Sequence record: OK040170.1
Direction: 5' to 3' (one strand)
DNA: 64,000 nucleotides
The stretch's first letter is position 1. Each line of letters starts with the position of its first letter. Below are positions 5,646 to 50,830 of this stretch, piece by piece. The position numbers and the translations under genes were made by a program. The notes under the pieces were generated by a model. It was not told the DNA's origin, searched no databases, and saw nothing but the letters and a program-made list of their open reading frames with translations.

Positions 5646-5786
5646 TCTCTTTAATTCATTTTTTACGTCGTGTCTTATAGTGTGCTAAAAGCACACAAGA
5701 CATCTCGCAAGAGGGGTCACGGCGGAGCCTGTGACTATTAGGGGTTAGAATGACTGAGGAATGTAATGACGAAAGGAATTCCCTAA
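5646..5786 (+). repeat. dispersed structured module, copy 1 of 3
   Basis: ATTTTTTACGT, then GGTCAC-GGC-gga-GCC-T-GTGACT (5715-5736), ATTA, then TAGGG...CCCTA enclosing GACTGAGGAATGTAATGACGAAAGGA (5752-5777). Confidence 0.85.
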
Positions 5787-5853
5787 GAGTACGGCTAGCT
5801 AAATACCCTAGATGAATTAGTGTGATTATAACTCAATAATCCACGTCTAAGAG

Positions 5854-6213
5854 ATGGAAAATACGATGAGAAGAAACCAAGCAGTAATCGATAAATCAAT
5901 CGAAGAACTGAACGATCTGTGCATTGGTGGCCCAGAGACTAAAGAGAAAACTCTGGCAATCAGCTCTGCTATGATGCAGATCTTTACCAACGGCTTAGGC
6001 TTGATGGTAAGTTCCTCTGAGGAAGGGAAGTATCCTCTGGGCAAATACGATTCATTCGCTGAAGTAAGTTTAGCGTCTAGTCGTATCTACGGTCAGATCG
6101 TAGTCTTCCGTGTACGCATTGGTTGGCAGGACACGACGTTCACTCGATTCGTGTTCCTGGATGAAGCAGGTGCTCCAGCCGCAGCCGTTGATGATATCGG
6201 TACTCCGTACTAA
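5854..6213 (+). CDS. hypothetical protein (119 aa)
   Basis: First ORF after module copy 1; followed by a terminator hairpin. Confidence 0.7.
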   Translation: MENTMRRNQAVIDKSIEELNDLCIGGPETKEKTLAISSAMMQIFTNGLGLMVSSSEEGKYPLGKYDSFAEVSLASSRIYGQIVVFRVRIGWQDTTFTRFVFLDEAGAPAAAVDDIGTPY

Positions 6214-6340
6214 GTAAAAATGATCCAGCTCATTCCTCTAACCGGGAGTGGGTTGGGTTATTCCTTTTATTTTTTGACGCTATGTATCCATGGTATAGCG
6301 ATTATGCTAGTTTAACTATTGAAAACAAGGGAAGAGAAAC

Positions 6341-6988
6341 ATGTCTGATACTCGTAAGCCGACTAAGATCCTGAGCATGGGTAAGCTCGTAGTAGAAGAG
6401 CAAATGGTTCGTGTGGTCGATATTAATCTTCTGGATCAAAACGGTGCACAACGCCCGGATATGGAAGCATTCAATCCAGCCTTCGGCTTCACTAAAGATC
6501 CGGTAGTATTCCAGAACCCAATGGCAATGTTCGGTTGCGCCAGCTCTATCGAAGAGCTGAACGAGGCGATTAAACCTCACTACGAAAACCTGCCGTGGGA
6601 ACTGTTCGAACTGATCGCTACCTTCAGCGAGACGTTCCGTATCTCCATCATGGTGAGCGCTAACAAAACGATCACCGCGCTGCTGGAAAGCAACGAAAGT
6701 ACCACGCTGGCCTGGTGGGTACCTAACCAGGGCGTGATCTATACTTCCTCTACCGATCGGGTACAGGCGATTCAACGTCGTCCACTCAACCCATCTGAAG
6801 TTCTGTATGCATTCAGCATTGCGTTGGCACAGCTCGGTATCGGCGCGCCGGCGGTAAGCATCTCTCGCACCGAAGACAACGAAGGCGTAGCGGTTACTTA
6901 TATCGACCAGGAAATGGCGATGAGCAACCCAGGTGCGTGTCGTATCTCTTTCGTGTTCCCATCCATGGCCACGGAAGTAAAACACTAA
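6341..6988 (+). CDS. hypothetical protein (215 aa)
   Basis: Strong codon bias and purine-rich SD. Confidence 0.8.
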   Translation: MSDTRKPTKILSMGKLVVEEQMVRVVDINLLDQNGAQRPDMEAFNPAFGFTKDPVVFQNPMAMFGCASSIEELNEAIKPHYENLPWELFELIATFSETFRISIMVSANKTITALLESNESTTLAWWVPNQGVIYTSSTDRVQAIQRRPLNPSEVLYAFSIALAQLGIGAPAVSISRTEDNEGVAVTYIDQEMAMSNPGACRISFVFPSMATEVKH

Positions 6989-7108
6989 TTCATTCGACAT
7001 GAGGGAGTTCGCTCCCTCTTTTTGTACAGGAGGATATAAACGCGAAGTGGTAACACTCTCCTCTCGCCAAGGTACTCGTTAAACACGACTACTTGAGGAA
7101 AAAAGAAC

Positions 7109-7777
7109 ATGCGCATGGTATTCTGGACTCTTGTCCTTTGCTTGGTAACATTCAGTTTCCCAGCAACCGCATCTGTATCCGTGAACCAGGCCGGTTGGAA
7201 TAAACACAAAACCGTCTTGCTTTCTACGTCCAAACGTACGGACGTAAACATGATGGATCTAGTCATTTTGGCTAGCATCGAATCAACTATGGGTCAAAAT
7301 CGTCATAACCGTTCCAGCTCCGCCGCAGGTCTGTTTGGGTTCACCGACAGTACGTGGCGTGTAATGGTTAAGCGTTACGGTAAACAGTACGGCATTCGAC
7401 CTGGTACAAGTAAACAAAACCCGCGAGCCAACGCTTTGATGGCTGCGGAATACATCAAGGAAAATCAACGATATCTTGAGAAGCAACTTCACCGTAAAGT
7501 CGGTATCGAAGAAATCTACATGGCTCACTTGCTCGGGCCTGGAGACGCTGTCAAGATCCTCAAAGCGCGTAACAACCGTTACGCTTCTTCCGTAACGCCT
7601 AGTGCTGCTCGGGGCAATAAAGCGTTCTTCTACGATAAAGGACGTGCCCGTACTGTAGCAGGATTTAAGCAATACGTTCATTCGAAAGTTAACAGCCACC
7701 GCAAAGCTTATAAAAGCGAAGTGGTTCTCTTAGCTTACAAACATCAACTCCCCCTAACTTTAGCTGACGCAACTTAA
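7109..7777 (+). CDS. lytic transglycosylase (SLT/GH23-like) with N-terminal signal peptide
   Basis: ASIES (catalytic Glu), SAAGLFGFTDSTW, NALMAAEY and YMAHLLGPG motifs; hydrophobic N-terminus ending in PATA. Confidence 0.8.
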   Translation: MRMVFWTLVLCLVTFSFPATASVSVNQAGWNKHKTVLLSTSKRTDVNMMDLVILASIESTMGQNRHNRSSSAAGLFGFTDSTWRVMVKRYGKQYGIRPGTSKQNPRANALMAAEYIKENQRYLEKQLHRKVGIEEIYMAHLLGPGDAVKILKARNNRYASSVTPSAARGNKAFFYDKGRARTVAGFKQYVHSKVNSHRKAYKSEVVLLAYKHQLPLTLADAT

Positions 7778-7886
7778 GCGTTCCGGGAATAACGAAGTGA
7801 CCATGGCGAGAGTAACTCATCCTTTCCTCTAGTTAATTCTAGAGGAAAGGGATCTATTCACTATTTTGTTAAAACAAGGAAACAAA

Positions 7887-8411
7887 ATGATTCACTATTC
7901 TCTGACTTTTCCATGTGGTTTGATCGAACGTGTCTCTAAGAAAGGAGATGCAACTATCGTCACTGCTAATATCGCCAAGGGGAATTTCCACTTTAACGTA
8001 CGCGGTGTTCGGGTCTACGATTCTTCCGTAGATAAGAAGCTCCCTAAGGAACATAAGGCTGCTATCGAGAAGTGTGAGCTCTACGGAGTTTGGCTGCATG
8101 TTCAGAAACACGGCGTCCCACCGAAGGTTCAGTTCTTCTCAGACCTGCCGTATTACTTAGACGACTCGAAAGAGTTCCCTAAGTTCGTTCAGAGTTTCTG
8201 TGGTAAAGATGCCTCTGTGGTCGAGCTCTATTTCAAGCCAGGTTATGACGATGACCTTTTCAAGTCTATCGTAGAGGCCGCAGGTCGACCGGTACCTTAC
8301 CTCAACCCGATTAACCGACCTACGCTTTATGATGCGTTGACTTTCGACGTATTCGCGTCAGCGTTCAACCCTCGTGAACTTAAACAAAACATGTCTCGTG
8401 CAAAAGGATAA
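7887..8411 (+). CDS. hypothetical protein
   Basis: ATG 7887 behind AAGGA preferred over the TTG at 7866. Confidence 0.7.
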   Translation: MIHYSLTFPCGLIERVSKKGDATIVTANIAKGNFHFNVRGVRVYDSSVDKKLPKEHKAAIEKCELYGVWLHVQKHGVPPKVQFFSDLPYYLDDSKEFPKFVQSFCGKDASVVELYFKPGYDDDLFKSIVEAAGRPVPYLNPINRPTLYDALTFDVFASAFNPRELKQNMSRAKG

Positions 8412-8417
8412 CTGAAA

Positions 8418-9026
8418 ATGAAAACTGATTATATCCAGGTCTTTAACTCCGGCTCAGTAAACGTTGAATCTCGCAGAGTAGACAACGACAAACTCCATTA
8501 TGTCATTCGCATTGATGGTGGCGTTCAAGTTACATTCACCTCCGTAAAACTTCCACTGACCTTCGTACTCGAGCGAGCTTATATCCTGCACTACTACGAA
8601 AACTATGGTGGTTCTAACTATTGGAAGAAAGCGGTCCCTTCTGCTATCGCGGAAGCCCTTCGTACCATCAGCACTACTCATCTGGTCGGGGAAGTTTATC
8701 TCGATACTTTCAAGCGTCTGATCGTTTCCGGCCAGGGTCGTTTGAACATTCCCCACATGGTGAGGGAAGTTGCTAAGTTGATCGATATGGGTACCGAAGA
8801 TTTTACTGTTAGGGTACAACGTTTCGAACTGAGTACCGACAGCAAGTTCCAGGTAATTCAAACTCTGTCAGCGGTATTCGATTTCGGCGAAGATCATTTC
8901 CGCCCGACCAAAACGGTCACCTTCACCCGCGTCGTTCCACAAGGCGCCTATCCGTTTAATTACCAAGAATTGGCTCAAGCTATGCGCGCTGAAGTCAATT
9001 TAGTTATCCGTGACATCAACGGCTAA
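8418..9026 (+). CDS. hypothetical protein (202 aa)
   Basis: Operon-like spacing after the previous gene. Confidence 0.75.
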   Translation: MKTDYIQVFNSGSVNVESRRVDNDKLHYVIRIDGGVQVTFTSVKLPLTFVLERAYILHYYENYGGSNYWKKAVPSAIAEALRTISTTHLVGEVYLDTFKRLIVSGQGRLNIPHMVREVAKLIDMGTEDFTVRVQRFELSTDSKFQVIQTLSAVFDFGEDHFRPTKTVTFTRVVPQGAYPFNYQELAQAMRAEVNLVIRDING

Positions 9027-9086
9027 ATAACAACATACTCGCCTAGGGAATTCCCTAGGCGTTTTATACCGTATATCGGAGTAGTC

Positions 9087-9665
9087 ATGAAAGATTCAAT
9101 TAAACACGCGTTTCGTACCGTACTTGAAACATACCGTACTGAGATAGAGCCATCACGAGTCATTAGCGACCATGGTGGTATTGCCTTATTCCACCAATTT
9201 GAAACTGATTTACCAGAAGAACACATCCATACGGCTGCATTGATTAACATTACAGATCACGTAGATCTCTTCGACATTGATCCTCTACGTGGTATCTGCC
9301 TACCCTGTGCATTATTTGTTACTGCCTATATGCAGGATGTTTACGGGTATGACGTAGTTAGGCAGGATCTTAAAGTACCGAATGAAGACTTCAGTGATTC
9401 GGTATTCCTTCATACTTTCATCTTGGAAGACGGTCTGCACTTCGATACATGTTACGTCGAAGGTCTGCGCTATATCCACGATCATCCTTTACTGCGCCAA
9501 TTCGATGAAGACGAAGATTGGTGGTTATCATTCTCGGATACTAAAGAAGATTACGGTATTATCCATAAGGGTACGGAACTTAGTGACTTCTTCGTTAAAT
9601 GCGCTGATTTGATCTACCCCGCTGCGTGCTCCCGTACGGAATTCAAAAAGATATTCCTTAACTAA
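9087..9665 (+). CDS. hypothetical protein (192 aa)
   Basis: GGAG SD. Confidence 0.75.
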   Translation: MKDSIKHAFRTVLETYRTEIEPSRVISDHGGIALFHQFETDLPEEHIHTAALINITDHVDLFDIDPLRGICLPCALFVTAYMQDVYGYDVVRQDLKVPNEDFSDSVFLHTFILEDGLHFDTCYVEGLRYIHDHPLLRQFDEDEDWWLSFSDTKEDYGIIHKGTELSDFFVKCADLIYPAACSRTEFKKIFLN

Positions 9666-9754
9666 GTTACGTAAAAAATAAACTCATCATCGTAGTCTAT
9701 GTACGGGATTCTCTTTAGAGTATCCTTTAGTTCATTAACGAAGAGAGATTTCTC

Positions 9755-10354
9755 ATGGCTAAAAGTAATGAGAATGAAGTAGCGTTCTTCTTCCAGATTA
9801 CGCCCGAAACACGGCAGACTCTGTTGGAGACACCAGACTACCTCATCATCACTCAGTCGGAAATCCAAACCGTAGCCGACAACGGCCTGCGGTTAACTAA
9901 CCGTGTTCGTCGTACCGAAGCTGTTCAGGCTAAGACCTCAGTTGGGGTTGTGTTTGAGTGCGCGACTAAATATCGGTTCCCTGGTAAACCCGGCGATATG
10001 ACTTCTCGTTGTCTGGAACGTGAATTCCAAGTTAGCGAAGAAGAATACGAACTTGCGTTGCCTTTTGGTGAGCGAGTTTACCACAAGCGTCGTTTCTCAT
10101 TCAACTTAGCTGGATTTGAAGCAGACCTTGACTGGTTCGTCGAGAAAGAGTCTAACGACTTCGGCGAATGGGTTAAACTGGATATCAATGTTCCTGAGGA
10201 AGGCATCACTGACAGTAAGCTCTATCAGTTACTGACTAAGTTGCCGCAATCAGGCATCACTATTGCAAACCTGATTAACCCACCTGGTATTTACAACGAA
10301 CGTATCAAATCCACTATTAGTGACCTGATGCAGAATACCTGGAACCTGGCATAA
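9755..10354 (+). CDS. putative CYTH-like (triphosphate tunnel) protein
   Basis: N-terminal ENE, RVRR, ERE..VS, KRRF, DLDWF and VKLDI follow the CYTH motif order; the ExExK Lys is missing. Confidence 0.45.
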   Translation: MAKSNENEVAFFFQITPETRQTLLETPDYLIITQSEIQTVADNGLRLTNRVRRTEAVQAKTSVGVVFECATKYRFPGKPGDMTSRCLEREFQVSEEEYELALPFGERVYHKRRFSFNLAGFEADLDWFVEKESNDFGEWVKLDINVPEEGITDSKLYQLLTKLPQSGITIANLINPPGIYNERIKSTISDLMQNTWNLA

Positions 10355-10424
10355 AGCCAACCGTACGGCGTAGGGGAATTCCTCTACGCCAAAACACCCA
10401 TTTATTTTTGAGGAGTATATCTCC

Positions 10425-10865
10425 ATGCGCAAACAATGTATTATTTGTAACGTAACCTTCGATCTTTCCCAATTCATGCGTGACGGTAAAGAACATGCCG
10501 ATTGCAATGGTTGCAACTGCTTCCAAAAAGCGAAGCCTGCTGCCAAAGTATTTGAACGTGTTACTGAGGTAAAAGATACCTGCAAGTGCCCGACGTGTTT
10601 AGAAGAGAAATCGATTAAAGAGTTCACAAAGGACTACAAGGTATATCGTTATTGCAATACCTGTCGTACCGAAGCACTCGAAAAACGAAGTGCAAAAAAC
10701 AAAGAACTCTTGGGTGCATTCGCGCCCAAATCTCAAACGCTTTGCCGCTGTTATCGTTGCGGTCGCATTAGTGCCACAACGAGTGGGGATTTTAAAATAT
10801 CAACAACCTCCGAAACAGGGTATAGCTTTTACTGTTATACGGTTTGTAAAGGGAGACGTGGATGA
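10425..10865 (+). CDS. Cys-rich multi zinc-ribbon protein
   Basis: Repeated CxxC pairs (CIIC, CNGC, CPTC, CNTC, CYRC). Confidence 0.7.
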   Translation: MRKQCIICNVTFDLSQFMRDGKEHADCNGCNCFQKAKPAAKVFERVTEVKDTCKCPTCLEEKSIKEFTKDYKVYRYCNTCRTEALEKRSAKNKELLGAFAPKSQTLCRCYRCGRISATTSGDFKISTTSETGYSFYCYTVCKGRRG

Positions 10866-11323
10866 AAGTCACCGTTAAACTTTCTGAAGGTATTGTTCAG
10901 AACGTTTCAGTGATCGATGATAGTAACGACGTAGTGCTGAACATCGCCCGTCGTTCCTCGGTAGCCAGACATTGTTTAATCGTTGGTACCAAAGACGGTT
11001 TACAAGTTTACCGCATTACTCGTACGCAGGCTGGTCGTAAGTTACCGATCCGCCCACTACTTAATCTCATCGAAGAAGATCTGAAAAGCCACTATAACTT
11101 AATGTTCCGTGGCGTATGCTGGGGTAAGCCGTCCTACTCTGTTTACAATGGCGTTAACCACTTCGTACTCAATACCTGTTTTATTAGTACCTGGGAAGGC
11201 GAAATCACCGAAGTCTTTAAAGAGACTCTGGAAAAGGCTGGGCTAGACACAGTTCCCAAAGCTGGACTTGTCGAGTTCATCAAGTACTTTACCTTCCAAA
11301 CACCTGAGCCAGAAGAAGAATAG
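10862..11323 (+). CDS. hypothetical protein (153 aa)
   Basis: ATGA overlap with the previous stop. Confidence 0.75.
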   Translation: MKVTVKLSEGIVQNVSVIDDSNDVVLNIARRSSVARHCLIVGTKDGLQVYRITRTQAGRKLPIRPLLNLIEEDLKSHYNLMFRGVCWGKPSYSVYNGVNHFVLNTCFISTWEGEITEVFKETLEKAGLDTVPKAGLVEFIKYFTFQTPEPEEE

Positions 11324-11398
11324 AGAGAGCCTCTGCACACTTTGTGTGCAGAGGTTTTTCTTTCTGTTACCCTCTTTTCTTTTTTGTTAGGAGTGCCC

Positions 11399-12205
11399 AT
11401 GGAACAAGTCACCTCAGCTATACCTGAGTCTACTGTAGATGAAAACAAGTATGCCATGACCTTCATGCTTTCTTTCAAACCAGAGAATGTAACACCTGGG
11501 TCATTGATTATCGACTTGTATGCCAATGGGGAAACTTACCCCGTACTGCTCTCTGTACCGCTGGGCTATGAAGTTCCATTTGAGAACACCGGGGACGTTA
11601 AGAAGATTATTGAAACCCTGATGAAAGGGGGTGCTAAGTTCACGGATGATTGGAGGATTGTTTCTACTTTCCTGGTCCACAAGGTCAGCCTCATCGACGA
11701 TATGTATCGCTTTGAGTTTGGTGAAGTCGTTTGCGTTCCACACGTAGACGAAGATGGGTTCGTTAGCGACTATCAGGTTTTGGCTGACGATACTGAACTC
11801 GATATGTCTGTTCACCGCATTGATCGCCATCTCATTGTTGTTCACGATAAAGTCAGCAATGAAGATATTACCGTCCACATGGTGACTGAAGATCAACCGG
11901 TTAAAACTGGGGACTGCATCGCCACAATCTTCGATATCGATACCAAGGAGAACTTCATCTACAACCTTTACAACTACAAACGTAAAGACGATGAAGAAAA
12001 GACCAACTACATCTGCGCCATGGTTTGGTTGACTCAAACTCAATCACTTGGTCAGTTTAGTTTCATGACAGGTGACTTCAGTTTGGCTAAGAGCGACTTA
12101 GGTGATATTGACCCAGGTTACCTTGCAGCGACAGTAACAGAACCAGACGGAACTGAGTACGATTTCGAAATTCCTAAAGAGCACTATATCGCCTCACTTC
12201 ACTAA
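11399..12205 (+). CDS. hypothetical acidic protein
   Basis: ATG 11399 (MEQVTS) behind AGGAG. Confidence 0.75.
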   Translation: MEQVTSAIPESTVDENKYAMTFMLSFKPENVTPGSLIIDLYANGETYPVLLSVPLGYEVPFENTGDVKKIIETLMKGGAKFTDDWRIVSTFLVHKVSLIDDMYRFEFGEVVCVPHVDEDGFVSDYQVLADDTELDMSVHRIDRHLIVVHDKVSNEDITVHMVTEDQPVKTGDCIATIFDIDTKENFIYNLYNYKRKDDEEKTNYICAMVWLTQTQSLGQFSFMTGDFSLAKSDLGDIDPGYLAATVTEPDGTEYDFEIPKEHYIASLH

Positions 12206-12214
12206 AACAAAATA

Positions 12215-12237
12215 GGTAGGAGGGTTTCCCTCCTACT
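12215..12237. terminator. bidirectional terminator hairpin
   Basis: GTAGGAGGG-ttt-CCCTCCTAC between convergent genes. Confidence 0.7.
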
Positions 12238-12244
12238 TGTGACC

Positions 12245-14147: not shown

Positions 14148-14149
14148 TA

Positions 14150-22356: not shown

Positions 22357-22388
22357 CGTTTACCTCATGGGTAAAGGGTTAGGTAATT

Positions 22389-22644: not shown

Positions 22645-24477
22645 ATGAGTCTGTCTGACCAAAACGTTAACGAAGCTAAAAACACCCAACGCGCTGCAGC
22701 TGCACAGGGTCAACAACCTCGCGAACAAGCAGGCCGTCGTCTGAACACCAACATCTTCGAAAGCGGCCAACTGGTACAAGCCGGCGTTTCCGGTAACGAA
22801 CTGACCACTTTCATCGAGCGCTTCAACGCTTATCACGACGCAAACAAAGCTGCTCTGTCTGCCGGCGGTCAACTGACCTGGGCCGTAATCCCAGCATCTT
22901 CTGGCGAAACCAAAATGAAGCTGGATGCAGCTGTCGTTGTCGGTAAAGCCACTACCTCCGAAGGCGTGATCACCACTGCACTGACTCTGCTGTTCACCGG
23001 CGGCCAGCCTCTGCCGAAGCAAGTCGTAGAGATCAGCAACCGTAACGAGCGTCAGTACTCTGCCGTCGCGAACGATCAGTTCACCGAAGCGTATCAGAAA
23101 AAGCTGACCGAAATCATCAACCGCAAAGCGCCTTACATGGGCGAAGCTGAAAACATCGTTCTGATGGGCGCCGTGGCAGTAACCAACGCGCAACTGAGCG
23201 AAGCGAAGTGTGAAGACCTGATCATCTCCGCGGTGAACTCCGTCTTCGGTTACCTGGGCAACATGCTGCGTACCGAACACTTCTCTCTGACCGATGCGAT
23301 CGACTCTCAGCGCAGCGAGTTCGTTTCTCGCGTGATCTACAATCAGGGCGATGCCCATGACGAAATCACCGAGCGTCCTCGTCGTCGCGATCTGGCCGTC
23401 GAAGTATCTCTGGCAACCAAAGGTCAGCGTAACCGTGTGTCTAACGCACTGGAAAACGCTGAAGGCGCAATGGACATCGCAACCATCGAAGGTTACGTTG
23501 ATCTGCTGTTCCTGGGTCGTCCGGATGGTCAGCAACGTCGTTCTCGCTACCGTTCTCAGCGTGAAGAAGACGCAGCGCGTCAGATCTACGGTAAAAACCT
23601 GGTCATCACCCACATGAAGCACGAAGCTTCTCCTGAGCACCTGTGCCTGGCACTGGCCCAGATCCCTGTACTGATCAACGAAAACGTTCTGACCACTGGC
23701 CTGAAGCCAGCCGGCGACAACGCGAAACTGCGTACTCCGGTTGCTCTGACCTACGAGCTGGACGAAGAGTTCGAAGCAGTGCCGGACGTTCTGGACGATG
23801 CAGAGTGGGCTGACCTGACCGACGTAGTGATCCAACCGGATCAGAACTTCGTAACCGTACTGATCGACGAAACCGGCATCACCACCCAACAGCAGAAACT
23901 GCTGCTGCAAGCGACCGACCGCATGAACCCGAACCGTGACCTGTTCGCAGACATGCTGGTACAAGCGGCTGATAACCTGACCAAAGGCGCCTTCATGGAA
24001 AGCCTGGGCGCAGCGCGTATCAACCCGCTGGATATCGGCGAACGTCAAGACCGTATCGTCCTGCTGGGCGAATGGACTGACGACCGTGGCCAAATCCGTT
24101 CTCTGACCGAAATCGACTACTACGCGATCCTGACTGCCTTCGGCCAGAAAGATCGTCGCATCGTAGAAGACTGGGATCGTTGCCAGAACGATGTAAGCCT
24201 GCCGATCGAAATCCGTCTGGCGAAAATGGAAGAGATCATCGACCAATTCACCGGCGGTTCCTACCGCATCACCGGTCACGGTGTTCCAGTACTGGTTAAC
24301 ACCCAGTGGCTGTTCACTCTGACCAACGCCGCAGAGCGCGCTGGTATGGTTACTCAGGCTGACGGTATCTATCAGGATACTCGTTTCCGTCGTGGTTTCC
24401 AATCTCAGTACGCTACTTCCGGTTACGCCGGCAAAGCGTTCCGTATGCGTGGTACTGGTCGCAACGATTACTTCTAA
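22645..24477 (+). CDS. chmA: chimallin, phage nuclear shell protein
   Basis: About 610 aa with extreme codon bias, AAGGAG SD before ATG 22645, low-complexity N-terminal arm; sits immediately upstream of the nvRNAP beta' N-terminal gene, the conserved chimallin position. Confidence 0.8.
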   Translation: MSLSDQNVNEAKNTQRAAAAQGQQPREQAGRRLNTNIFESGQLVQAGVSGNELTTFIERFNAYHDANKAALSAGGQLTWAVIPASSGETKMKLDAAVVVGKATTSEGVITTALTLLFTGGQPLPKQVVEISNRNERQYSAVANDQFTEAYQKKLTEIINRKAPYMGEAENIVLMGAVAVTNAQLSEAKCEDLIISAVNSVFGYLGNMLRTEHFSLTDAIDSQRSEFVSRVIYNQGDAHDEITERPRRRDLAVEVSLATKGQRNRVSNALENAEGAMDIATIEGYVDLLFLGRPDGQQRRSRYRSQREEDAARQIYGKNLVITHMKHEASPEHLCLALAQIPVLINENVLTTGLKPAGDNAKLRTPVALTYELDEEFEAVPDVLDDAEWADLTDVVIQPDQNFVTVLIDETGITTQQQKLLLQATDRMNPNRDLFADMLVQAADNLTKGAFMESLGAARINPLDIGERQDRIVLLGEWTDDRGQIRSLTEIDYYAILTAFGQKDRRIVEDWDRCQNDVSLPIEIRLAKMEEIIDQFTGGSYRITGHGVPVLVNTQWLFTLTNAAERAGMVTQADGIYQDTRFRRGFQSQYATSGYAGKAFRMRGTGRNDYF

Positions 24478-24578: not shown

Positions 24579-25856
24579 TTGGGTGTTTATCTGTTAAATC
24601 CGGACTATGACAGGGATATCGCAGCTCTGCCTCGTCCTCCAATTATCCTCAATGATATCGACCCGGCGCATTATGAAGGTACTGATCCAGTCAAAGAACT
24701 GACCATGACCGAATATAGCGACGACTTCATTGAGACATTACCGGCGTGTGAGTGTGGCCACACCCATGGTCGGTATAATTCATCGAACGACCCAAGTATC
24801 CCTAACACGGTATGTCCGAAATGTCAGACTGAAGTGATGAGCCCAATCGATCGAGGGTTTAAATCTTCTGTGTGGCTGAGAGCACCTAACGGTGTTCGTG
24901 CGTTCATCCGTATCAATGCGTTGGTCATGTTGCTGAAGAACTTCACCCAGGAGAACTTCTCGGCAATTGAATGGCTCTGTAACACCAAATATAAGCCAAC
25001 CAACGATACCAGTGCCACGTTCCGTCGGTTCAAAGAACTGAACATCCCTCGTGGTTATAATCACTTTATCGAGAACTTCGATGACATCCTGGGCGCGATG
25101 GTAGATAGTAAGATATTCAAGCCATCTGCTAACCGTAACGATGCGTTGGTGTATTTTGATAAGTTCAGGGATCTCCTGTTCCCAACCGTCCTCCCGCTGC
25201 CATCTCGCCGGTCTATCATCACGGAGCTTAGTAACAAAACTCGCTTCTGTGCTGAAGGCTATGCAGATGTCGTCGATGCTGCACGAGCTATTTATAGCTT
25301 GGTCGGTAAAGATGAACCGCGTTATCAAGTGACTAAGGAATATCACGTATTCCGAGCACTGATGATGTTGGTGAAGTATCGGGAATATATCGACAAGAAC
25401 ATCCTGGGTAAGAAAGAAGGCTGGTTCCGTAAACAGATCTATGGATCTCGTACCGGGCCAACTTATCGTGGCGTAGTAACGTCTATCGCGGGATCTCACG
25501 ACTATGAAGAAATGCATATGCCGTGGGGGATTGCGTTAGGGGTTTATCACACCCACTTGATCGGAAAGTTAGTTCGTCGCGGATTCACCATCCAAGACTC
25601 TGAGGATCTACTGATCTCTTCAGTAGGGCGTTATAATCCGCTGATCTCCACTCTGCTGGATGAGCTGATTGACGAATCTCCGTTTACGACAATTAGTGGT
25701 AAACGTGGACTGCCTCAGTTGCTGGGTCGAAATCCAACGTTGAACTTACGTTCGATTCAGAACCTGTTTGTCACCAAAATCAAAAGGGACGTGCACGACA
25801 ATACTATCGGCCTATCGCTGCTAGTGCTGAAGGCTCCGAACTGTGACTTCGACGGT
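24579..25856 (+). CDS. non-virion RNA polymerase beta' N-terminal subunit (phiKZ gp55-like), exon 1
   Basis: Zn-binding CECG...CPKC, RKQIYGSR, GRNPTL and NCDFDG; the catalytic motif is cut after Gly. Confidence 0.88.
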
Positions 25857-26152
25857 AGAAGTAACCCAACTAAGTTGCCGTCTTAAAACTCCTTTAACTG
25901 CTGGGAACTCTTGCTAGGTAGATTGGCTACAACGTAACTGGAAACGGTAAGCGTGAATGCTTGAAAACAATCTAATAGAGACAATCAGCATCCAAGCTCC
26001 TGTAAAATGGAGAAGGTTCAACGACTATCGAAAGCACGTAACACGGATGTGGTAAACGTAGTGAGTAGAGTAGGGGAAACCCGAAACGGGGAGCACTTGA
26101 ACGATTCAAGTGAAGATATAGTCTGTTAAGTACTCGGTGCATTTAGCCGAGG
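25857..26152 (+). mobile_element. group I intron (phage IA2-like), 296 nt, no endonuclease ORF
   Basis: P AACTGCTGGGAA (25896), Q AATCAGCA (25983), R TTCAACGACTAT (26017), S AAGATATAGTCT (26113); P1 GACGGT/GCCGTC with U-G at the 5' site; P9 CTCGG/CCGAG then terminal G26152. Confidence 0.9.
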
Positions 26153-26326
26153 GACATGTTGGGCGGGATGCCTATCCTGAGTAAGGCGGATTATCATCGT
26201 GTGCGCAAATTAGCTCCTCACACGGGTACATTCGATCTGAACAAACCGCACGCCTTGAACAACAATATGGCGTTGGGTGCTCCGGTAAGGGCTACGATAA
26301 ACAACTACCTTCACAGGAGGAAGTAA
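26153..26326 (+). CDS. nvRNAP beta' N-terminal subunit, exon 2 (57 aa, gp56.1-like)
   Basis: DMLGGMPILSKADYHRVRKLAPH...NNYLHRRK*; splicing restores NCDFDGD and gives a 483-aa protein. Not in the ORF track. Confidence 0.85.
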   Translation, partial: DMLGGMPILSKADYHRVRKLAPHTGTFDLNKPHALNNNMALGAPVRATINNYLHRRK

Positions 26327-40766: not shown

Positions 40767-40775
40767 TAACGTCAT

Positions 40776-43445: not shown

Positions 43446-43497
43446 ATCATAGGCGGAGGGGAAACCCTCCGATCTATTTTGTTTTAGGAGAAATAAC

Positions 43498-43929: not shown

Positions 43930-43930
43930 C

Positions 43931-44840: not shown

Positions 44841-44901
44841 ACAACAAACGAGTAGGGCAAACGCCCTACTCTATTCACAATCGCTTATAGGGCGTCTAAT
44901 C

Positions 44902-45960
44902 ATGGGTTATTACTCAGTCCTTATCTTCTTTCCTGGTTTATTAATTATTCTGGGATCTAAGTATTTCTTTCCTCGTCAAATTACCAGGAAGGAGTTCATG
45001 GTTCAGCTGGGGTGCCTTGTTGTCTCGACTGCTATAGCGACTGCAGCATTGTCTGCCGGTCAGTTATACAAGACATCTGATTTCAATATCCTAAACGGCG
45101 TAGTTACTGATAAGAAGCGGGTAGAAGTTTCATGCGAACATCAGTACCAGTGCGACGAAATATGCTCAGGTACCGGTAAAAATCGAAGCTGTACTCCAGT
45201 CTATTGCGATGAGCACGATAACGACTGGGATTACAACGTTTACACTACCGTCGGTAAGTTTGAAATAAAGCGACTGGATGATCAGGGGGCTCGTACACCG
45301 CCTCGTTGGTTAGCGGCTAAGATTGGCGAGCCTGCTGCCAAAGTAGAATCGGTCACCAACTATACGTTAATCGATGATGAGCGTTATAAGGCTGAGGAAG
45401 CGAGTGAACTTAAGTACAAGGGTAAGTTACCTGATTATCCTAAGACTGAGGATTACTATCGCTATAATCGTATCGTAAATACCACCCCGTTCTCGTTCGG
45501 TTATTTGAACAACTACCTCAATCGAATGCTGATTGAATACGGTGCGAAGAAACAACTGAACGTTATCCTGGTTATTACCGAAAATGATCCTGACTACTGG
45601 AAGGCACTTCGTAGCCACTGGAAAGGGGTTCGGAAAAACGATGTTGTATTAGTTTACGGTATCGGGGATAATAATGAGATCAAATGGTTCGAAGCAGAGA
45701 CATTCGCTGACGGGGAAGGTAATCGTAGATTGATTATTGATCTGGAAGGGATGGCGCGGAACAATCGTTTGGGTTACGATCTTGTACATCATCAGTTTGA
45801 ACATATCGTTACCGAGTATGTCCGTAAACCGAACGCTGAGTTCGCGTATATGGCCAGTAATTACTCTCCGCCTATTTGGTGGATTGTTCTAATCATTTTC
45901 ATCAACATGCTCGTCACTGGTGGCGTGGCTATATACTTCAAAGACAACAGAGTCTTTTAA
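44902..45960 (+). CDS. membrane protein with TPM(DUF477)-like C-terminal region
   Basis: Two N-terminal and one C-terminal TM segments, CEH..C..C Cys cluster, NVILVI...HWKGVRKNDVVLV. Confidence 0.55.
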   Translation: MGYYSVLIFFPGLLIILGSKYFFPRQITRKEFMVQLGCLVVSTAIATAALSAGQLYKTSDFNILNGVVTDKKRVEVSCEHQYQCDEICSGTGKNRSCTPVYCDEHDNDWDYNVYTTVGKFEIKRLDDQGARTPPRWLAAKIGEPAAKVESVTNYTLIDDERYKAEEASELKYKGKLPDYPKTEDYYRYNRIVNTTPFSFGYLNNYLNRMLIEYGAKKQLNVILVITENDPDYWKALRSHWKGVRKNDVVLVYGIGDNNEIKWFEAETFADGEGNRRLIIDLEGMARNNRLGYDLVHHQFEHIVTEYVRKPNAEFAYMASNYSPPIWWIVLIIFINMLVTGGVAIYFKDNRVF

Positions 45961-45977
45961 TTAAGGAATAAAATACC

Positions 45978-46559
45978 ATGGGCGTTTCTGCAGATAAAAC
46001 CGCTTTCTCTTTCGCTAAAGCTTTAGTAGTAGCGATGTTACTTTCCGGTGCTGTGATTGTAGGGGTTACAGTCGCGTACGTATCCGCTTACAACGAAGGT
46101 AATAAGAGCGAAGAACAGATCAAGTATCTGAATACTGAATCAGAGAACCGTCTGAGCTCCTACACGAACTCTGTGCTGGAGCAAGCACAAATTCCAGAGA
46201 AGTACAAGGACAACTTGAAAGACGTCCTTAAAACGGCTCTGGAAGCTCGTTATGGCGATACCGGTAATAAGTCTACTATCTCCTTTATCCAGGAGCACGC
46301 AGTTAACTTCGACAGCAAGATGTACGAAAACATTCAGGCGACTATCAAGTCTGGCCGTGAGGAGTTCCGTATCTCTCAAACTCGTAAGATTGAAACCTGC
46401 CGTAACTACCGGACTTCCCTGGGTTACTTCTGGAAAGGGACTTTCTTGAAGTTTGCCGGTTATCCGAAAGTTAACCTGGACGATGTCTGCGCCCTGGTGA
46501 GCGATGAGCGCTCCATGGAAGCATTCAAAACCAAAAAGACATCACCAATCAAACTGTAA
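45978..46559 (+). CDS. LemA-like membrane-anchored protein
   Basis: N-terminal TM then YN, helical body, C-terminal RNY...FW..FLKFAGY. Confidence 0.6.
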   Translation: MGVSADKTAFSFAKALVVAMLLSGAVIVGVTVAYVSAYNEGNKSEEQIKYLNTESENRLSSYTNSVLEQAQIPEKYKDNLKDVLKTALEARYGDTGNKSTISFIQEHAVNFDSKMYENIQATIKSGREEFRISQTRKIETCRNYRTSLGYFWKGTFLKFAGYPKVNLDDVCALVSDERSMEAFKTKKTSPIKL

Positions 46560-46625
46560 TAATAAAACCCTCAGAGAGCCGCTTACGCTCTCTGAGGGCC
46601 TATAACGTTTAATAGAGGAAGTGTA

Positions 46626-47183
46626 ATGGAAACTCGTATGGTCTTTAGTAACCTTCGTCGTACTGCGGGTAAGTTGTTCCGCAATGTAGGCTTTCGTGAG
46701 GAGGGTGCACAAACTAACCTCAACTCACTGAATACGGCTCAGTACGAAGTAGTGACTTTCTTGAATCAGTCACTTAATGCTGGCGTTAACAATATTATCA
46801 AAAGTATTGCCAGTGAGTCCACTGTAGAGGAAATGGCGCATTTATTCCGTCATGCCCATACGTTGGGTTTCCTCAAGTGTGACGTCGCCGTCCTGACCTG
46901 TAAGCGAGGTTTTCAGAAGGGGTCGTTCTACGTCTACCTTCATGAAGAAAGCCTGAGTAAGAAAGTTTACCTGGAATGGGTAATTCACCAGGTAGGGCTG
47001 ATGTGGGGAGTTAACCTTCCGATTAAGGTTGTAACCGATTGTCAGTACGTTAGTGACACTCGAGTTAACCCTAATGAACTAAACGATCTTGATCACTTGA
47101 GTTTGTACTATCAACTCATCTCGTTCGGGGTAGATGTTTATCCTGGTAATGCGGGTAAAGAATCGGCATTTCTGATTAAGTAA
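46626..47183 (+). CDS. hypothetical protein (185 aa)
   Basis: GAGGA SD. Confidence 0.75.
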   Translation: METRMVFSNLRRTAGKLFRNVGFREEGAQTNLNSLNTAQYEVVTFLNQSLNAGVNNIIKSIASESTVEEMAHLFRHAHTLGFLKCDVAVLTCKRGFQKGSFYVYLHEESLSKKVYLEWVIHQVGLMWGVNLPIKVVTDCQYVSDTRVNPNELNDLDHLSLYYQLISFGVDVYPGNAGKESAFLIK

Positions 47184-47191
47184 TTAGTTAG

Positions 47192-47316
47192 CTCTCATTT
47201 TTTACGTACGTTTCAATTATGTGTCAGAACTTGGTCACGGCCCGGAGGGTCTGTGACTATTAGGGGTTTTAGAGTGAACTAGGATGACCAAAGGGAAGAC
47301 GAAGTGAGCTCCCTAA
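47192..47316 (+). repeat. dispersed structured module, copy 2 of 3
   Basis: CTCTCATTTTTTACGT, GGTCAC-GGCCC-gga-GGGTC-T-GTGACT (47233-47258), ATTA, TAGGG(47261)...CCCTA(47315) enclosing a GA-rich hairpin. Confidence 0.85.
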
Positions 47317-47435
47317 ACGCGTGGATAATTAACCCCATTTAAACTAAATTGATATTCACTGGTAGATTAAGTTCTACTGGTGATTATTGATCTATTTTGT
47401 AAAATTACCAATATACCTCCATTGGATCTTAGGTA

Positions 47436-47443
47436 TATATTAC
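47436..47443 (+). promoter_or_regulatory. TATATTAC early promoter
   Basis: GGTATATATTACCAGATTGA. Confidence 0.7.
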
Positions 47444-47463
47444 CAGATTGAATAGATTACTAC

Positions 47464-48027
47464 TTGGATAACAGGAGAAGTAAATTGAAACACTTATCAA
47501 TTACCGCTGGTTGGGGTAGCGTTAAGAACACTACGATCATCAGCTACGAAGATAACGATACTTTATCTCGTGGATTACTCCATACGTTCATTAACGAAGC
47601 AAGTGGAAGTTTCTGCCTGGATCATCTGGAAGCTATCGCTAAAGTGGTACGCGGTATTGTTAGCGGTGAACTGCGCACAGATGAGGACATCGTTGTAGTC
47701 CCTTCTTATCTCACTGTTTCATACAGCCAAGAACGTTCAGTTTGGACCAGGGCCCGTTACCAGATTTTCTCAGGTGGCGAGTTAATCTGGAAAGGGATTT
47801 TCGCATTAGATAGTAATGGCGACTTCGATACTGCATGGATGGTGCGCGCTTGGGTATCGAAAGCACTTATTCGCGTCGACCATAATTTGATAGGCTATGC
47901 TGCTGACATCATGGAACGTGTCCGGAGTAGCGATAACCTCAAGAAAGAATTGGTAATAGAGCGCTTTGTCTTTGAAGGCAAAGAGATTATTGTCAACGTG
48001 TCTAAAAGCTACCAAGGAGCTAAGTAA
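47464..48027 (+). CDS. hypothetical protein
   Basis: TTG start; an alternative TTG behind AGGAG at about 47485. Confidence 0.7.
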   Translation: MDNRRSKLKHLSITAGWGSVKNTTIISYEDNDTLSRGLLHTFINEASGSFCLDHLEAIAKVVRGIVSGELRTDEDIVVVPSYLTVSYSQERSVWTRARYQIFSGGELIWKGIFALDSNGDFDTAWMVRAWVSKALIRVDHNLIGYAADIMERVRSSDNLKKELVIERFVFEGKEIIVNVSKSYQGAK

Positions 48028-48287
48028 TGTCCAGAGAAAGTATCGTTAGTGTTACACTGAAATCCGAATACTGCGATGTTAGTGAGAAAGAGTTTTCTTA
48101 CTACTGCGGCGAAGAGCGTTCTCTCATGTGCGTTGCTGATGAGATTGCTGAATGGATCGAAGAGTGTAGCGTAATGCTCTGCCCTGAGCCAGACGACATC
48201 CAAGAGGCGTTGGAAAACCTTTATCTCAACGGCTCGTCTAAAATGGATACACTGGATGAAACGGAAGTCTTGTTCCGGAAAGTTTAA
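48027..48287 (+). CDS. hypothetical acidic protein (86 aa)
   Basis: AGGAG SD, TAATG junction. Confidence 0.75.
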   Translation: MSRESIVSVTLKSEYCDVSEKEFSYYCGEERSLMCVADEIAEWIEECSVMLCPEPDDIQEALENLYLNGSSKMDTLDETEVLFRKV

Positions 48288-48298
48288 AGGGGCCTGTT

Positions 48299-48871
48299 GT
48301 GGAAAACAAAGAATACATTTTAACGGTTAAAGAAAACGTTATCCGTGTTAAGTTACCGGGCGAGACTACGAAAGAAGAGTTCGTTCGCAAAGTCTCCAAA
48401 GAAATCCGTAAACAACTCAGCCGCGTGGCAAGTAAAGTCATCGTGGAAGGGTTGACGTCCCAATTACCGGAATACCTGGGTAAGTATTATCAGGAAACCG
48501 AGCAGTACAATTACGCGATGCTCTCAGCGGCTTATAACCTGTCGCTGTACGTTATCCCTATCGATGATACTCAGGTAGAATTAAAACCGGTTATACGTTC
48601 TCTGGGAGCGTGTCGTGGGCACATTACGTACAAAGGTCAGAAGAGTCCGTTCATTCTCATGGAAGGAGATACTCTAGAAGAGGCGGTAACAAAAGTCCAT
48701 CGTCGCTTGGCTACTAAAATCAAGGAAACTAATTTCCCTGAAGACCTGGAGTTAATCGAGTCAGGTCTAGCTAAAGATTCCATTACGGAAATCCTGGGCT
48801 ACTTTGCAAATGATGGTGAGCGCGGGTCAACTATCGAACATCCGTGTGGCATCGTTCTCTTTATCGAATAA
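48299..48871 (+). CDS. hypothetical protein (190 aa)
   Basis: GTG start, AGGGG SD. Confidence 0.75.
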   Translation: MENKEYILTVKENVIRVKLPGETTKEEFVRKVSKEIRKQLSRVASKVIVEGLTSQLPEYLGKYYQETEQYNYAMLSAAYNLSLYVIPIDDTQVELKPVIRSLGACRGHITYKGQKSPFILMEGDTLEEAVTKVHRRLATKIKETNFPEDLELIESGLAKDSITEILGYFANDGERGSTIEHPCGIVLFIE

Positions 48872-48883
48872 TTACCTGGAGCA

Positions 48884-50038
48884 TTGAAAGTGAAAAAAGA
48901 AAAGATGGTTAAAGTAGAAATCGTAGTTAATGGTCAACATCGCCTTACTCGTATTTTTGACGTCGATAACCTTAACGCTGTGTCGGATGCCATTGCGGAA
49001 AACAAAGAAGTATTCTCCGGTGACGAATTCAAACAATTAACCGATAACTACATGGAAAGCGTCAAGTGGCGTATTCGCGATGGCTTTATCGGTGTAATTG
49101 GACTCGGTACTTCACTGAACATTTCCGCCTGCGTATCCAAACCTACCGATCTGGAACTACAGCGCGTTAGCGTTTCTCTCCGAGCCCCTGGGAATCTATC
49201 GACTCGATTGATCCGCACGATCTGCTATCGTGGTGAGATCAACGATATGTTCTCGCTGTTTAAAGTTAACTTACTTCGTAGACTGTCTTTGACGGCCAGG
49301 GCGTTTTTGAGCTCACTTAAGTACGAAGACTGGAGCAAACTACGTTCTGGGGATAATGAGTTAGCCCTCATGGGGAGTGACTACACGCTGGTAGTTACAC
49401 CGGTAGGCCAACCTGCTGAGAAAATCGTTCAGATCTTCACGCCTGTGGAAATCAGAGAAATCATCGAGAGCCCGCAGGCAATTAAGAAGGATACTATCGA
49501 TTTGCCTCCGGAATTACTTGAGGCGATCGGTACGGTTTCTGAGTTACATCGCCGTAAAGCTCAGAACGGTGGTCGTTGGGAACTTCGGGAATTAGCTAAC
49601 CCTGAATTACAATTGAAGGTATGTTCGGCCGCTGTTTCGCCAATCACGGATTGGGCCAGTAATACACTGCAATATCTCGTGTCCCCACGTCGGGTTGGTA
49701 AACATTCGGTGGAAGAGGTATTCAAAAAGCTATCGGCTCGGCACGAGGAACTTCAGGCACTATGTAAACGCGGCGAAGACATGAGTAAGGTCATCGTCTA
49801 TCGTGGCTCCGCCGAGGCCAATGGTAAGAAGACCAACTTCGTTTTGACCTACGATATGGTCTACGGTAAACAAGAGGGGTTTAGCTGGGTCATCGACCGC
49901 GTAGCTCGCCAGATTAAACGTAACTTGGGCGAAAACATTTCTCCGCCTATCCTCTATCATGCGTTCCATATCACTAACTTGGGGCACTGGGTAGAATTAG
50001 TCCCTGGACTTAATATCCGCATTGAAGCTGTACTTTAA
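48884..50038 (+). CDS. hypothetical protein (384 aa)
   Basis: TTG start behind GGAG. Confidence 0.75.
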   Translation: MKVKKEKMVKVEIVVNGQHRLTRIFDVDNLNAVSDAIAENKEVFSGDEFKQLTDNYMESVKWRIRDGFIGVIGLGTSLNISACVSKPTDLELQRVSVSLRAPGNLSTRLIRTICYRGEINDMFSLFKVNLLRRLSLTARAFLSSLKYEDWSKLRSGDNELALMGSDYTLVVTPVGQPAEKIVQIFTPVEIREIIESPQAIKKDTIDLPPELLEAIGTVSELHRRKAQNGGRWELRELANPELQLKVCSAAVSPITDWASNTLQYLVSPRRVGKHSVEEVFKKLSARHEELQALCKRGEDMSKVIVYRGSAEANGKKTNFVLTYDMVYGKQEGFSWVIDRVARQIKRNLGENISPPILYHAFHITNLGHWVELVPGLNIRIEAVL

Positions 50039-50102
50039 ACCCGTCATAGGCCCGTAGGATTAACCTACGGGCTACTATAATCTTTTTTAGAAGGAAAATA
50101 AA

Positions 50103-50696
50103 ATGAACTATCGTGGCAAAGTAAATGGCGATGAATACCTGGCATCTGTAGTTAAGTCTGTTCTGTTCTCTGGCTCGGTACCCGATGCAGATTCCCGCAG
50201 TGAACTCCATTGCGTTTCAGTTGCAATCCCTAAGTTCGATGTCATCAAAGAAGTTAAGTTCAACTTCGCTGGCGGGGCATCTTGCTTGGATGAATATCAA
50301 TACCCCGTACGTGAGGTCTGTGAGACGCTACAGGCCATGGGTGTTAAAGGTGTCACTCTGGTAACCCAGAGACTTGTTCGTGCCTTAGAGGCCCGTCTGA
50401 CGACGATTGTCCCAAACATGGATGACTTCTCCGTCAACCAGTATTGCGAATGGTTGAAAGTTACCATCCGTGAAAAGATTGCATTATGCTATCCGGATAT
50501 GTTAGCCGTGTATGTCGAACCTAACTCTGATCTGTTCGTGGTAGATGAGTTAGAACAACCTTGTCCTACTGGTTCAGTCAATGTGGTTATGGCTGATATG
50601 GTTGGTTCAGTATTCGGTTGTGAATTGTATTCGTGTACTTACTTCACGGATGATGGTGTTATCAATCCGATATTCAAGTTTGTACTTAAACAGTAA
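50103..50696 (+). CDS. hypothetical protein (197 aa)
   Basis: AAGGA SD. Confidence 0.75.
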   Translation: MNYRGKVNGDEYLASVVKSVLFSGSVPDADSRSELHCVSVAIPKFDVIKEVKFNFAGGASCLDEYQYPVREVCETLQAMGVKGVTLVTQRLVRALEARLTTIVPNMDDFSVNQYCEWLKVTIREKIALCYPDMLAVYVEPNSDLFVVDELEQPCPTGSVNVVMADMVGSVFGCELYSCTYFTDDGVINPIFKFVLKQ

Positions 50697-50700
50697 TAAT

Positions 50701-50830
50701 CTCTCATTTTTTACGTCACTTCTCTTTAGTTTGTCAAAACAATACCACTCAGGTCACGGCCGTAGGCCTGTGACTAATAAGTACCCGTATGACTGAAGAA
50801 CGTAGTGATGAAAGGAATACATCTTGGGTA
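50701..50830 (+). repeat. dispersed structured module, copy 3 of 3
   Basis: CTCTCATTTTTTACGTC, GGTCAC-GGCC-gta-GGCC-T-GTGACT (50752-50775), AATA, TACCC(50782)...GGGTA(50830) enclosing GACTGAAGAACGTAGTGATGAAAGGA (50791-50816). Confidence 0.85.

Follow-up and report, generated by a model that had tools for sequence, protein, structure and literature searches.

A three-copy structured module in Serratia phage BUCT660, a candidate cis-encoded regulatory RNA of the genus Moabitevirus

Introduction

Jumbo phages related to phiKZ transcribe their genomes with their own multisubunit RNA polymerases (reviewed in PMC7598289), and regulation in the nucleus-forming members is known at the level of promoter motifs only. 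Early promoters of jumbo phages are AT-rich extended -10 elements with a T-rich part upstream of -19 (PMC7598289; PMC8244752). The middle motif of phiKZ is TACT, with its centre at -22, and the phiKZ gene gp054 has a primary start of the early class and a secondary start of the middle class (PMC8244752). We found no conserved RNA regulatory element described in the literature for nucleus-forming jumbo phages, and the single small RNA predicted by differential RNA sequencing (dRNA-seq) of phiKZ could not be confirmed (PMC8244752). Here, we describe a non-coding module with two hairpins, present in three copies in bases 1-64000 (hereafter the window) of Serratia phage BUCT660 (OK040170.1, 272,720 bp), a member of the genus Moabitevirus.

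The put RNAs of phage HK022 are cis-acting antitermination RNAs that act on the host RNA polymerase. The promoters of phage N4 are hairpins extruded by supercoiling and stabilised by SSB. They form from the template strand, and a G occupies the middle of the loop at position -11 (PMC4496689). The PeSL elements of T4-type phages combine a strong sigma-70 consensus promoter, AT-rich in its upstream region, with a terminator stem-loop located before or over this promoter, and are dense in hyperplastic regions (PMC2839356; PMC4122927).

The record of BUCT660 annotates a tubulin-like protein (PhuZ) and split RNA polymerase beta/beta' subunits, in virion and non-virion sets, and the open reading frame (ORF) at 22645-24477 is similar to the PHROG 'nuclear shell protein' family (E=2e-55; the chimallin gene). 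BUCT660 is therefore a phiKZ-like nucleus-forming jumbo phage, transcribing with its own multisubunit polymerases; no host-type regulators are annotated in the record. Our analysis of the module supports a folded single-stranded nucleic-acid element rather than a duplex operator, and we consider the chances about even that each copy corresponds to a cis-encoded regulatory RNA, which would control the read-through, stability or translation of units of ORFan genes.

Results

Three copies of the module are present in all Moabitevirus genomes

An earlier note on this DNA had described a three-copy non-coding module at positions 5646-5786, 47192-47316 and 50701-50830, and direct reading combined with scans confirmed these coordinates, the order of the elements and their intergenic position. 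The pattern GGTCACGGC-N3-12-CTGTGACTA has three matches in the window and none in 100 dinucleotide shuffles. Exactly these three copies were recovered by a regular-expression scan of the whole 272,720-bp genome, and likewise by the covariance-model scan that the note had proposed, in which they score 78-90 bits and the next match 13.5 bits. All three are located on the + strand, in the same orientation as every neighbouring gene, and share an identical CATTTTTTACGT sequence.

The module is present in three copies in 10/10 Moabitevirus records, and no further member was detected outside this genus by blastn (E<=10) against 50,697 phage records. A loose hairpin pattern gave 118 matches in viral contigs, mostly attributable to chance, the sole real one being the contig of phage 2050HW; more specific patterns found nothing beyond this contig in IMG/VR viral contigs, JGI metagenomes and 185,579 bacterial genomes. 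Relatives of the flanking proteins were also missing outside the genus among viral contigs, metagenomes and 5.8 billion proteins. The genes beside the copies are ORFans without Pfam or PHROG family, and they are mutually unrelated: an all-against-all BLASTP comparison of 23 neighbouring ORFs detected no paralogy, which rules out a tandem gene duplication. The repeat is therefore the non-coding unit itself.

In 2050HW (L128, around 5790), the gene located after copy 3 matches only from residue 6, the cause being one additional T in CATTTTAG (a frameshift or a sequencing error). The same gene matches only from residue 6 in Kodama (tblastn coverage), whose record was linearised precisely between copy 3 and this gene.

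A covarying helix with invariant G-A steps

The hairpins are distributed as follows.

Copy 1 hairpin 1: 5715-5736, + strand; lower stem GGTCAC/GTGACT with a bulged T, upper stem GGC/GCC, GGA triloop.
Copy 1 hairpin 2: 5738-5786, + strand; closing stem TTAGG/CCTAA, inner helix 5748-5781 (GAAU-GA-CU-GA-G-GA, 7-nt loop, GA-C-GA-A-AG-GA-AUUC).
Copy 2 hairpin 1: 47233-47258, + strand; 5-bp upper stem including one G-U pair, GGA triloop.
Copy 2 hairpin 2: 47260-47316, + strand; inner helix 47272-47311 with GAGU/GCUC, tandem G-A pairs and a 13-nt loop.
Copy 3 hairpin 1: 50752-50775, + strand; 4-bp upper stem, GTA triloop.
Copy 3 hairpin 2: 50782-50830, + strand; closing stem TACCC/GGGTA, inner helix 50787-50820 with GUAU/AUAC, three tandem G-A pairs and a 7-nt loop.

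Hairpin 2 shows strong compensatory change. We compared eight distinct sequences, corresponding to the three copies in the BUCT660 group, the three copies in Totoro, its most distant relative, and two close variants. The order of the inner helix is 4 bp, a G-A/A-G step, 2 bp, a bulged A, a second G-A/A-G step, 1 bp, a third G-A/A-G step and a loop, 7 nt long except in copy 2 (13 nt). Both sides change in five of the seven Watson-Crick pairs (A-U/U-A, A-U/G-C, C-G/A-U, C-G/U-A and G-C/A-U), e.g., from U-A to C-G and from G-C to A-U between copy 1 of BUCT660 and that of Totoro, and a U-G pair of copy 2 becomes U-A in Yaphecito and Haymo. Under the proposed structure, 99.3% of the cells in the eight sequences correspond to standard pairs; this fraction falls to 33-40% when the partners are slid by 1-3 columns, and the covariation score was reached by 0/500 shuffles. 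RNAalifold independently predicts the same pairs. The three tandem G-A/A-G steps are invariant in all eight sequences. In the closing stem, TAGGG/CCCTA in copies 1 and 2 is replaced by TACCC/GGGTA in copy 3, with three G-C pairs swapped for C-G, so that the flip reported in the earlier note could be read directly; this stem is kept in copies 1 and 2 of Totoro, with its 3' strand shifted further downstream.

Hairpin 1 varies far less. All three copies share the lower stem GGTCAC/GTGAC(T) with its bulged T, and the upper stems of 3, 5 and 4 bp (copies 1, 2 and 3) are capped by C-GGA-G, C-GGA-G and C-GTA-G, as the earlier note had observed. The paralogues differ in upper-stem length alone: the GTCAC/GTGAC half-sites are separated by 10, 14 or 12 nt, and this spacer is self-complementary in every version. 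The linker to hairpin 2 is TATTA or TAATAAG. Triloop and bulge, whose conservation the note had proposed to verify in further copies, are shared by the paralogues, and BUCT660 does not differ from Totoro in hairpin 1 (100% identity), yet the protein encoded after copy 3 is merely 41.6% identical between these two phages. This verification covers Totoro and the paralogues, since the searches for members were negative beyond the genus. Hairpin 1 is followed by TATTAGGGG, without a U-tract, and scans ruled out an intrinsic terminator, as well as a sigma-70 promoter, both here and at the box. A function as a sponge for CsrA was ruled out as well, the loop of copy 3 being GUA rather than GGA.

Folded RNA or folded DNA

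Several features favour RNA over DNA as the folded molecule. G-U pairs are present at (1,26), (8,18) and (43,76), one of which is replaced by A-U in Yaphecito and Haymo. Only the + strand can form the G-A steps, the opposite strand giving C-T mismatches, and this one-strand purine asymmetry is accompanied by the co-orientation of the module with the genes and, for copy 2, by a terminator and a separate promoter (see below). With DNA folding parameters, only hairpin 1 folds well, on either strand, and hairpin 2 is weak; a role of hairpin 1 as single-stranded DNA is possible. The description of the module as a folded-DNA element in the earlier note thus holds as far as a folded single-stranded element is concerned, and the evidence fits RNA better than DNA.

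A promoter-like box precedes the hairpins in each copy

Upstream of the hairpins, the three copies share a box made of CTCTC and TTTTTTACGT, with T-R-T-G 16 nt further on.

Copy 1 promoter-like box: 5645-5684, + strand; CTCTC, TTTTTTACGT (5659-5668) and TAGTGTG ending at G5684, the putative start site.
Copy 2 promoter-like box: 47192-47223, + strand; CTCTC, TTTTTTACGT (47198-47207) and TTATGTG ending at G47223.
Copy 3 promoter-like box: 50701-50733, + strand; CTCTC, TTTTTTACGT (50707-50716) and TTTAGTTTG ending at G50733.
Copy 1-only hairpin: 5670-5703, + strand; strong extra hairpin over the putative start site (RNAfold).

This extra hairpin reads GTGTCTT..GTGTGCT-AAA-AGCACAC..AAGACAT, and its upper part, GTGTGCT-AAA-AGCACAC, is kept in Totoro.

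The motif TTTTTTAC(G/A)N, with T-R-T-G after 16 nt, is also located ahead of the PhuZ gene (13110) and of the tRNA cluster (53525). Slightly altered spacing is seen in variants at 22387, a distal position before the chimallin gene, and in two further places, around 210 and 225 kb. These sites outside the modules are all intergenic and, except for one near 225 kb (- strand), all on the + strand. In the window, TTTTTTACR-N10-13-TRTG has four matches, including the PhuZ and tRNA-cluster sites, against 0.03 expected from shuffles; all four are intergenic and on the + strand. Since the PhuZ, chimallin and tRNA genes carry the same box without the hairpins, the box is probably a phage promoter of the 'middle' type.

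The layout of the chimallin gene, with a distal TTTTTTAC box (22387) and a proximal early-type TATATTCC site (22537), mirrors that of phiKZ gp054 and led us to the same suggestion: in both phages, the gene of the shell protein bears an early-type site and a site of a second class. The box also resembles phiKZ middle promoters, which serve the non-virion polymerase, in that an A/T-rich run terminates in TAC some 20 nt ahead of the start, and in its T-A/G-T-G start motif; motif and fixed spacing are enriched and co-oriented with genes, the start site being putative. In contrast to phiKZ, the Moabitevirus sequence (TTTTTTACGT) is genus-specific, and its three module copies add two conserved putative RNA domains that the other sites of this class do not have. 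A sigma-70 scan detected no site at the box; in copy 1, TTTACG and TATAGT are merely 8 nt apart.

A second consensus, (ATTTCAcGTa)TATAT(T/C)AC(tnna)TGATAgg, has about 20 sites genome-wide, all intergenic and on the + strand, six of them in the window (14501, 31249, 36436, 47436, 59227 and 63339) and about 15 more in L002-L006. This consensus fits the published description of jumbo-phage early promoters. It is annotated in none of the records, and a literature search with the string TATATTAC returned noise only.

The usual terminators of the phage are hairpins of the GAGAGGG..CCCTCTC type, often followed by TATTTTAC(G), e.g., at 4844-4865 and 7001-7018 and at many sites in L002-L006. This TATTTTAC(G) tail overlaps the T-run and ACG of the box, which complicates promoter calls made from motifs only.

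Copy 2 is closed by its own terminator-like hairpin

Copies 1 and 3 are located directly ahead of operons of ORFan genes (5866-6988 and 50883-53515, respectively) that contain several terminators, and no terminator with a U-tract separates either copy from its next gene. Two further elements are present downstream of copy 2.

Terminator-like hairpin and U-rich tail closing the copy 2 unit: 47356-47395 (hairpin 47356-47383), + strand; terminator scan.
Separate early-type promoter-like site (TATATTAC..TTGAATAG) for the gene at 47485: 47436-47456, + strand.

The hairpin at 47356-47383 is annotated as a terminator in Moabite, and its G-T wobbles in BUCT660 correspond to Watson-Crick pairs in Moabite. 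Copy 2 thus looks like a candidate released RNA of about 170 nt. The statement in the earlier note that the copies head gene clusters is valid for copies 1 and 3 and not for copy 2, where the terminator-like hairpin and the promoter-like site intervene.

Comparison with known RNA families

A scan of the window against Rfam 15 at gathering scores detected only a group I intron and two tRNAs, and scans of the three modules at E<=10 found nothing above 16 bits, below the threshold of every family. Motifs of the k-turn, box C/D and loop E types, in which sheared G-A pairs also occur in tandem, resemble hairpin 2 with its three invariant 5'-GA/3'-AG steps. In the module, these pairs directly adjoin Watson-Crick pairs, and a single A is the sole bulge. 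As no G-A step is flanked by a 3-nt bulge, the helix is not a canonical k-turn. Copy 3 reads CUGA ... GUGAUGA, reminiscent of boxes D' and C'. No Rfam model of box C/D RNAs came near its threshold, and we know of no L7Ae-type protein in BUCT660.

Other candidates were rejected. Copies 1 and 3 contain CUGAGGA...GAAA and CUGAAGA...GAAA, as in a hammerhead core, but the intervening 10 nt are unpaired, copy 2 has no such core and no Rfam match was obtained. A possible likeness of copy 3 to a type I-F CRISPR repeat could not be confirmed, the CRISPR-DR models having no match on the hairpin. Copy 3 (50746-50876) also gave a weak alignment with the Enterococcus-1 RNA, which pairs the hairpin and the purine-rich GAAGAACGUAGUGAUGAAAGGAA stretch with similar features of the consensus; with 12.5 bits against a threshold of 71 (E=3.7), this match is probably due to chance.

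The group I intron (25833-26142; RF00028, 58 bits) interrupts the 'RpoBC' gene of a non-virion polymerase subunit, which is annotated as two coding sequences (24579-25886 and 26168-26326). The two tRNA genes, Tyr (53831-53912) and Ser (53925-53997, missed by ARAGORN), are surrounded by long non-coding stretches (53516-54619). A tRNA-like match at 53683-53750 corresponds to the mascRNA model (30 bits, E=8e-4, below threshold), and the 622-nt gap at 53998-54619 holds T-arm-like GGTTCGATCCC sequences that are possibly decayed tRNAs.

Discussion

A model for the module as a cis-acting RNA

If each copy acts as a cis-encoded RNA, the phage-specific promoter box, a T-run with ACGT that precedes a T-R-T-G start by about 18-25 nt and resembles the 'middle' promoters of phiKZ, would start this RNA about 10-30 nt before hairpin 1; alternatively, the module may be transcribed by read-through from the upstream gene. 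The RNA would fold into two domains, one being the invariant bulged hairpin with its GNA cap and the other a long irregular helix in which Watson-Crick pairs may covary freely and neither the purine-rich strands nor the three tandem G-A/A-G pairs, of the sheared type, change. A factor would most likely recognise the parts that do not vary, namely the G-A steps, the GNA cap and the lower stem with its bulged U, and the covarying parts would serve as scaffolding; RNAs to which a protein or a polymerase binds usually combine a fixed surface with a covarying scaffold in this way. The trans-acting factor contacting this surface could be an RNA-binding protein of the phage or of the host, or the RNA polymerase of the phage; by its contact, it would control the downstream ORFan RNA at the level of stability, read-through or translation. 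Copy 2, with its own terminator, would be freed as the small RNA described above.

Some observations weigh against this model. Single-stranded DNA, too, can stably form a C-GNA-G triloop and tandem G-A pairs. Because orthologues do not differ in hairpin 1, this hairpin brings no covariation evidence, and the covariation in hairpin 2 comes from two lineages (the BUCT660 group and Totoro) with three paralogues each, for an effective sequence number of 1.8. In copy 2 of Totoro, a regular helix replaces one of the tandem G-A segments. Part of the box signal could correspond to terminator tails, because a T-run followed by ACG also trails several terminator hairpins in the BUCT660 genome. No candidate for the binding protein could be recognised among the neighbouring genes, which are all ORFans (Pfam, PHROG). 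Finally, the box as promoter, the start site, the RNA itself, its processing, the contact with a factor and the outcome of this contact are all predictions made from the sequence.

Alternative explanations

The closest rival, which overlaps with the cis-leader model and which we consider unlikely, is a family of stand-alone trans-acting small RNAs that would titrate or guide a host or phage factor, as decoys or sponges. It would account for copy 2, with its succession of promoter-like box, two domains and terminator and with a next gene that has its own promoter, and for the fact that hairpin 1 and the invariant purine-rich surface are the same in three copies despite unrelated downstream genes. 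However, copies 1 and 3 have no U-tract terminator before the next gene, we found neither a complementarity target nor a partner, and the sensitive Rfam search retrieved no small RNA family. It is decidedly unlikely, in our opinion, that the two-domain RNA is a cis-acting modifier of the phage polymerase or a tag for nuclear export or sorting. As a modifier, it would act on the polymerase in the manner of HK022 put or offer a phage factor a loading site similar to nut, making the transcription of the three ORFan operons resistant to the many terminators of this genome; as a tag, it would be recognised by a phage protein that sorts transcripts or exports them from the phage nucleus. The put RNAs likewise consist of two adjacent stem-loops just past a phage promoter, occur more than once in a genome and are located ahead of operons containing terminators, but they share no sequence similarity with the module and act on the host polymerase, whereas BUCT660 uses its own enzymes. 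Standing between these two RNA alternatives in our estimate, and thus rather unlikely as the primary function, is a recombination anchor comparable to PeSL elements, in which about 130 bp of shared sequence would allow related phages, or copies inside one genome, to recombine and exchange the flanked ORFan cassettes. Some junctions do coincide with the module: identity between BUCT660 and Totoro is 93-100% over the gene preceding copy 3 and across this copy, and falls abruptly to 35-60% from 50831, the first base after the closing stem of copy 3; the next protein is 41.6% identical. An additional gene in Yaphecito, Haymo and Totoro ends <=10 nt from the left edge of copy 2, and the 44-54 kb region contains several indels. 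The earlier note had proposed that the copies bound variable genes, and this is true of the right edge of copy 3 and of the left edge of copy 2, but copy 1 is located in a region that is fully colinear in 10/10 genomes. Two further indels in the region are not beside a module, and an indel beside copy 2, that of a HTH_3 gene, has CAGGAGAA Shine-Dalgarno repeats as its borders: two of them flank this gene in Moabite and Totoro (L009 2374-3160) and a single one is present in BUCT660 (47470-47490), so that the gene was cleanly gained or lost between Shine-Dalgarno sequences. Junctions would be expected beside any selected element anyway, and the compensatory changes and invariant G-A pairs testify to a selection on the fold that a pure homology anchor would not need. 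PeSL elements and the module are both composites of a promoter (in the module, a promoter-like box) and a stem-loop, repeated between ORFans in a plastic early region, with some indel or replacement junctions adjoining them. They differ in that PeSLs are series of motifs densely filling hyperplastic regions, whereas the module exists in three copies only, has no sigma-70 match, contains a covarying G-A-rich second domain and carries both hairpins 35-120 nt after the box, without a U-tract. The analogy drawn in the earlier note thus holds as 'could work like' only: two junctions adjoin module edges, the others using Shine-Dalgarno repeats or sites outside the modules, and the sigma-70 promoter, terminator stem-loop and dense repetition of PeSLs have no counterpart in the module; recombination is a possible secondary property of the module.

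The readings as DNA fare less well. That the module is a folded-DNA element, be it a priming site, an N4-type hairpin promoter extruded by supercoiling or the site of a hairpin recombinase (attC, Y1/HUH), appears very improbable. It draws on the C-GNA-G triloop of every copy, on the ability of hairpin 1 to form on either strand with DNA parameters and on the GGA-type loop of N4 promoters, in which a G:A pair is sheared (PMC4496689); these promoters also have a short GC-rich stem, a G-N-A triloop closed by C-G and three copies per genome. Unlike them, the module copies are not clustered at one genome end, their stems measure 9-11 bp with a bulge (5-7 bp in N4), and the central loop base of copy 3 is T, whereas N4 requires -11G (PMC4496689). 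The GNA loop is on the non-template (+) strand of rightward genes, the template reading TCC or TAC, and no leftward genes are present in the surroundings of the modules. Hairpin 2 is weak as DNA, with its G-A motifs on one strand only, and a linear promoter-like box, part of the module itself, precedes the hairpins. The 316 annotated features include virion multisubunit polymerase genes (156483-163085), and the largest gene is that of a tail lysozyme (6.6 kb); a single-subunit virion RNA polymerase of the N4 type (about 3500 aa) is not among them, which, with the wrong strand, the T in the loop of copy 3 and the longer bulged stem, leaves the N4-like promoter suggested in the earlier note unsupported. 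Its other suggestion, a substrate for integron integrases or Y1/HUH transposases, is not borne out either: no tyrosine recombinase or other integrase and no HUH transposase is annotated (as judged from annotation, the proteome having had no profile scan), and the attC core GTTRRRY is absent from the module borders by direct reading. A duplex operator for a dimeric repressor, such as the HTH_3 protein, or a tiny coding gene starting with MTEE is extremely improbable. GTCAC/GTGAC is indeed an inverted repeat, and the HTH_3 gene follows copy 2 in two genomes (Moabite and Totoro). Four genomes that retain all three modules (BUCT660, 2050HW, Yaphecito and Haymo) nevertheless lack this gene, and half-sites separated by 10, 14 and 12 nt are a misfit for a fixed dimer; this variable spacing therefore excludes a fixed duplex operator. 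The ATG-led frames of copies 1 and 3 share MTEE-x-x-DERN by direct reading, but the frame ends after 4 codons in copy 1 of Totoro, copy 2 has no ATG at the corresponding position and its GTG-led frame ends after 2 codons. The differences between copies 1 and 3 correspond to one compensatory pair and loop positions and, together with the early stops, rule out the micro-ORF.

Significance

We regard the module as a probable new motif among structured RNAs, of a general type already known and confined to one small genus. The resemblance to N4 hairpin promoters, tempting as it was, proved unsupported, and this reading is corrected here. As a by-product, the analysis provides two promoter-like consensus motifs for the genus Moabitevirus. 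For a group of phages whose regulation has been described through promoter motifs, the module is a compact candidate backed by covariation, and it offers three handles: the bulged hairpin, the three fixed G-A steps and a natural stand-alone copy that ends in a terminator-like hairpin. A factor binding the module, if there is one, would be a new regulator of phage transcription or RNA fate and, should the polymerase-modifier or export-tag reading be true, the module would be the first RNA-based control element for the transcription system of chimalliviruses.

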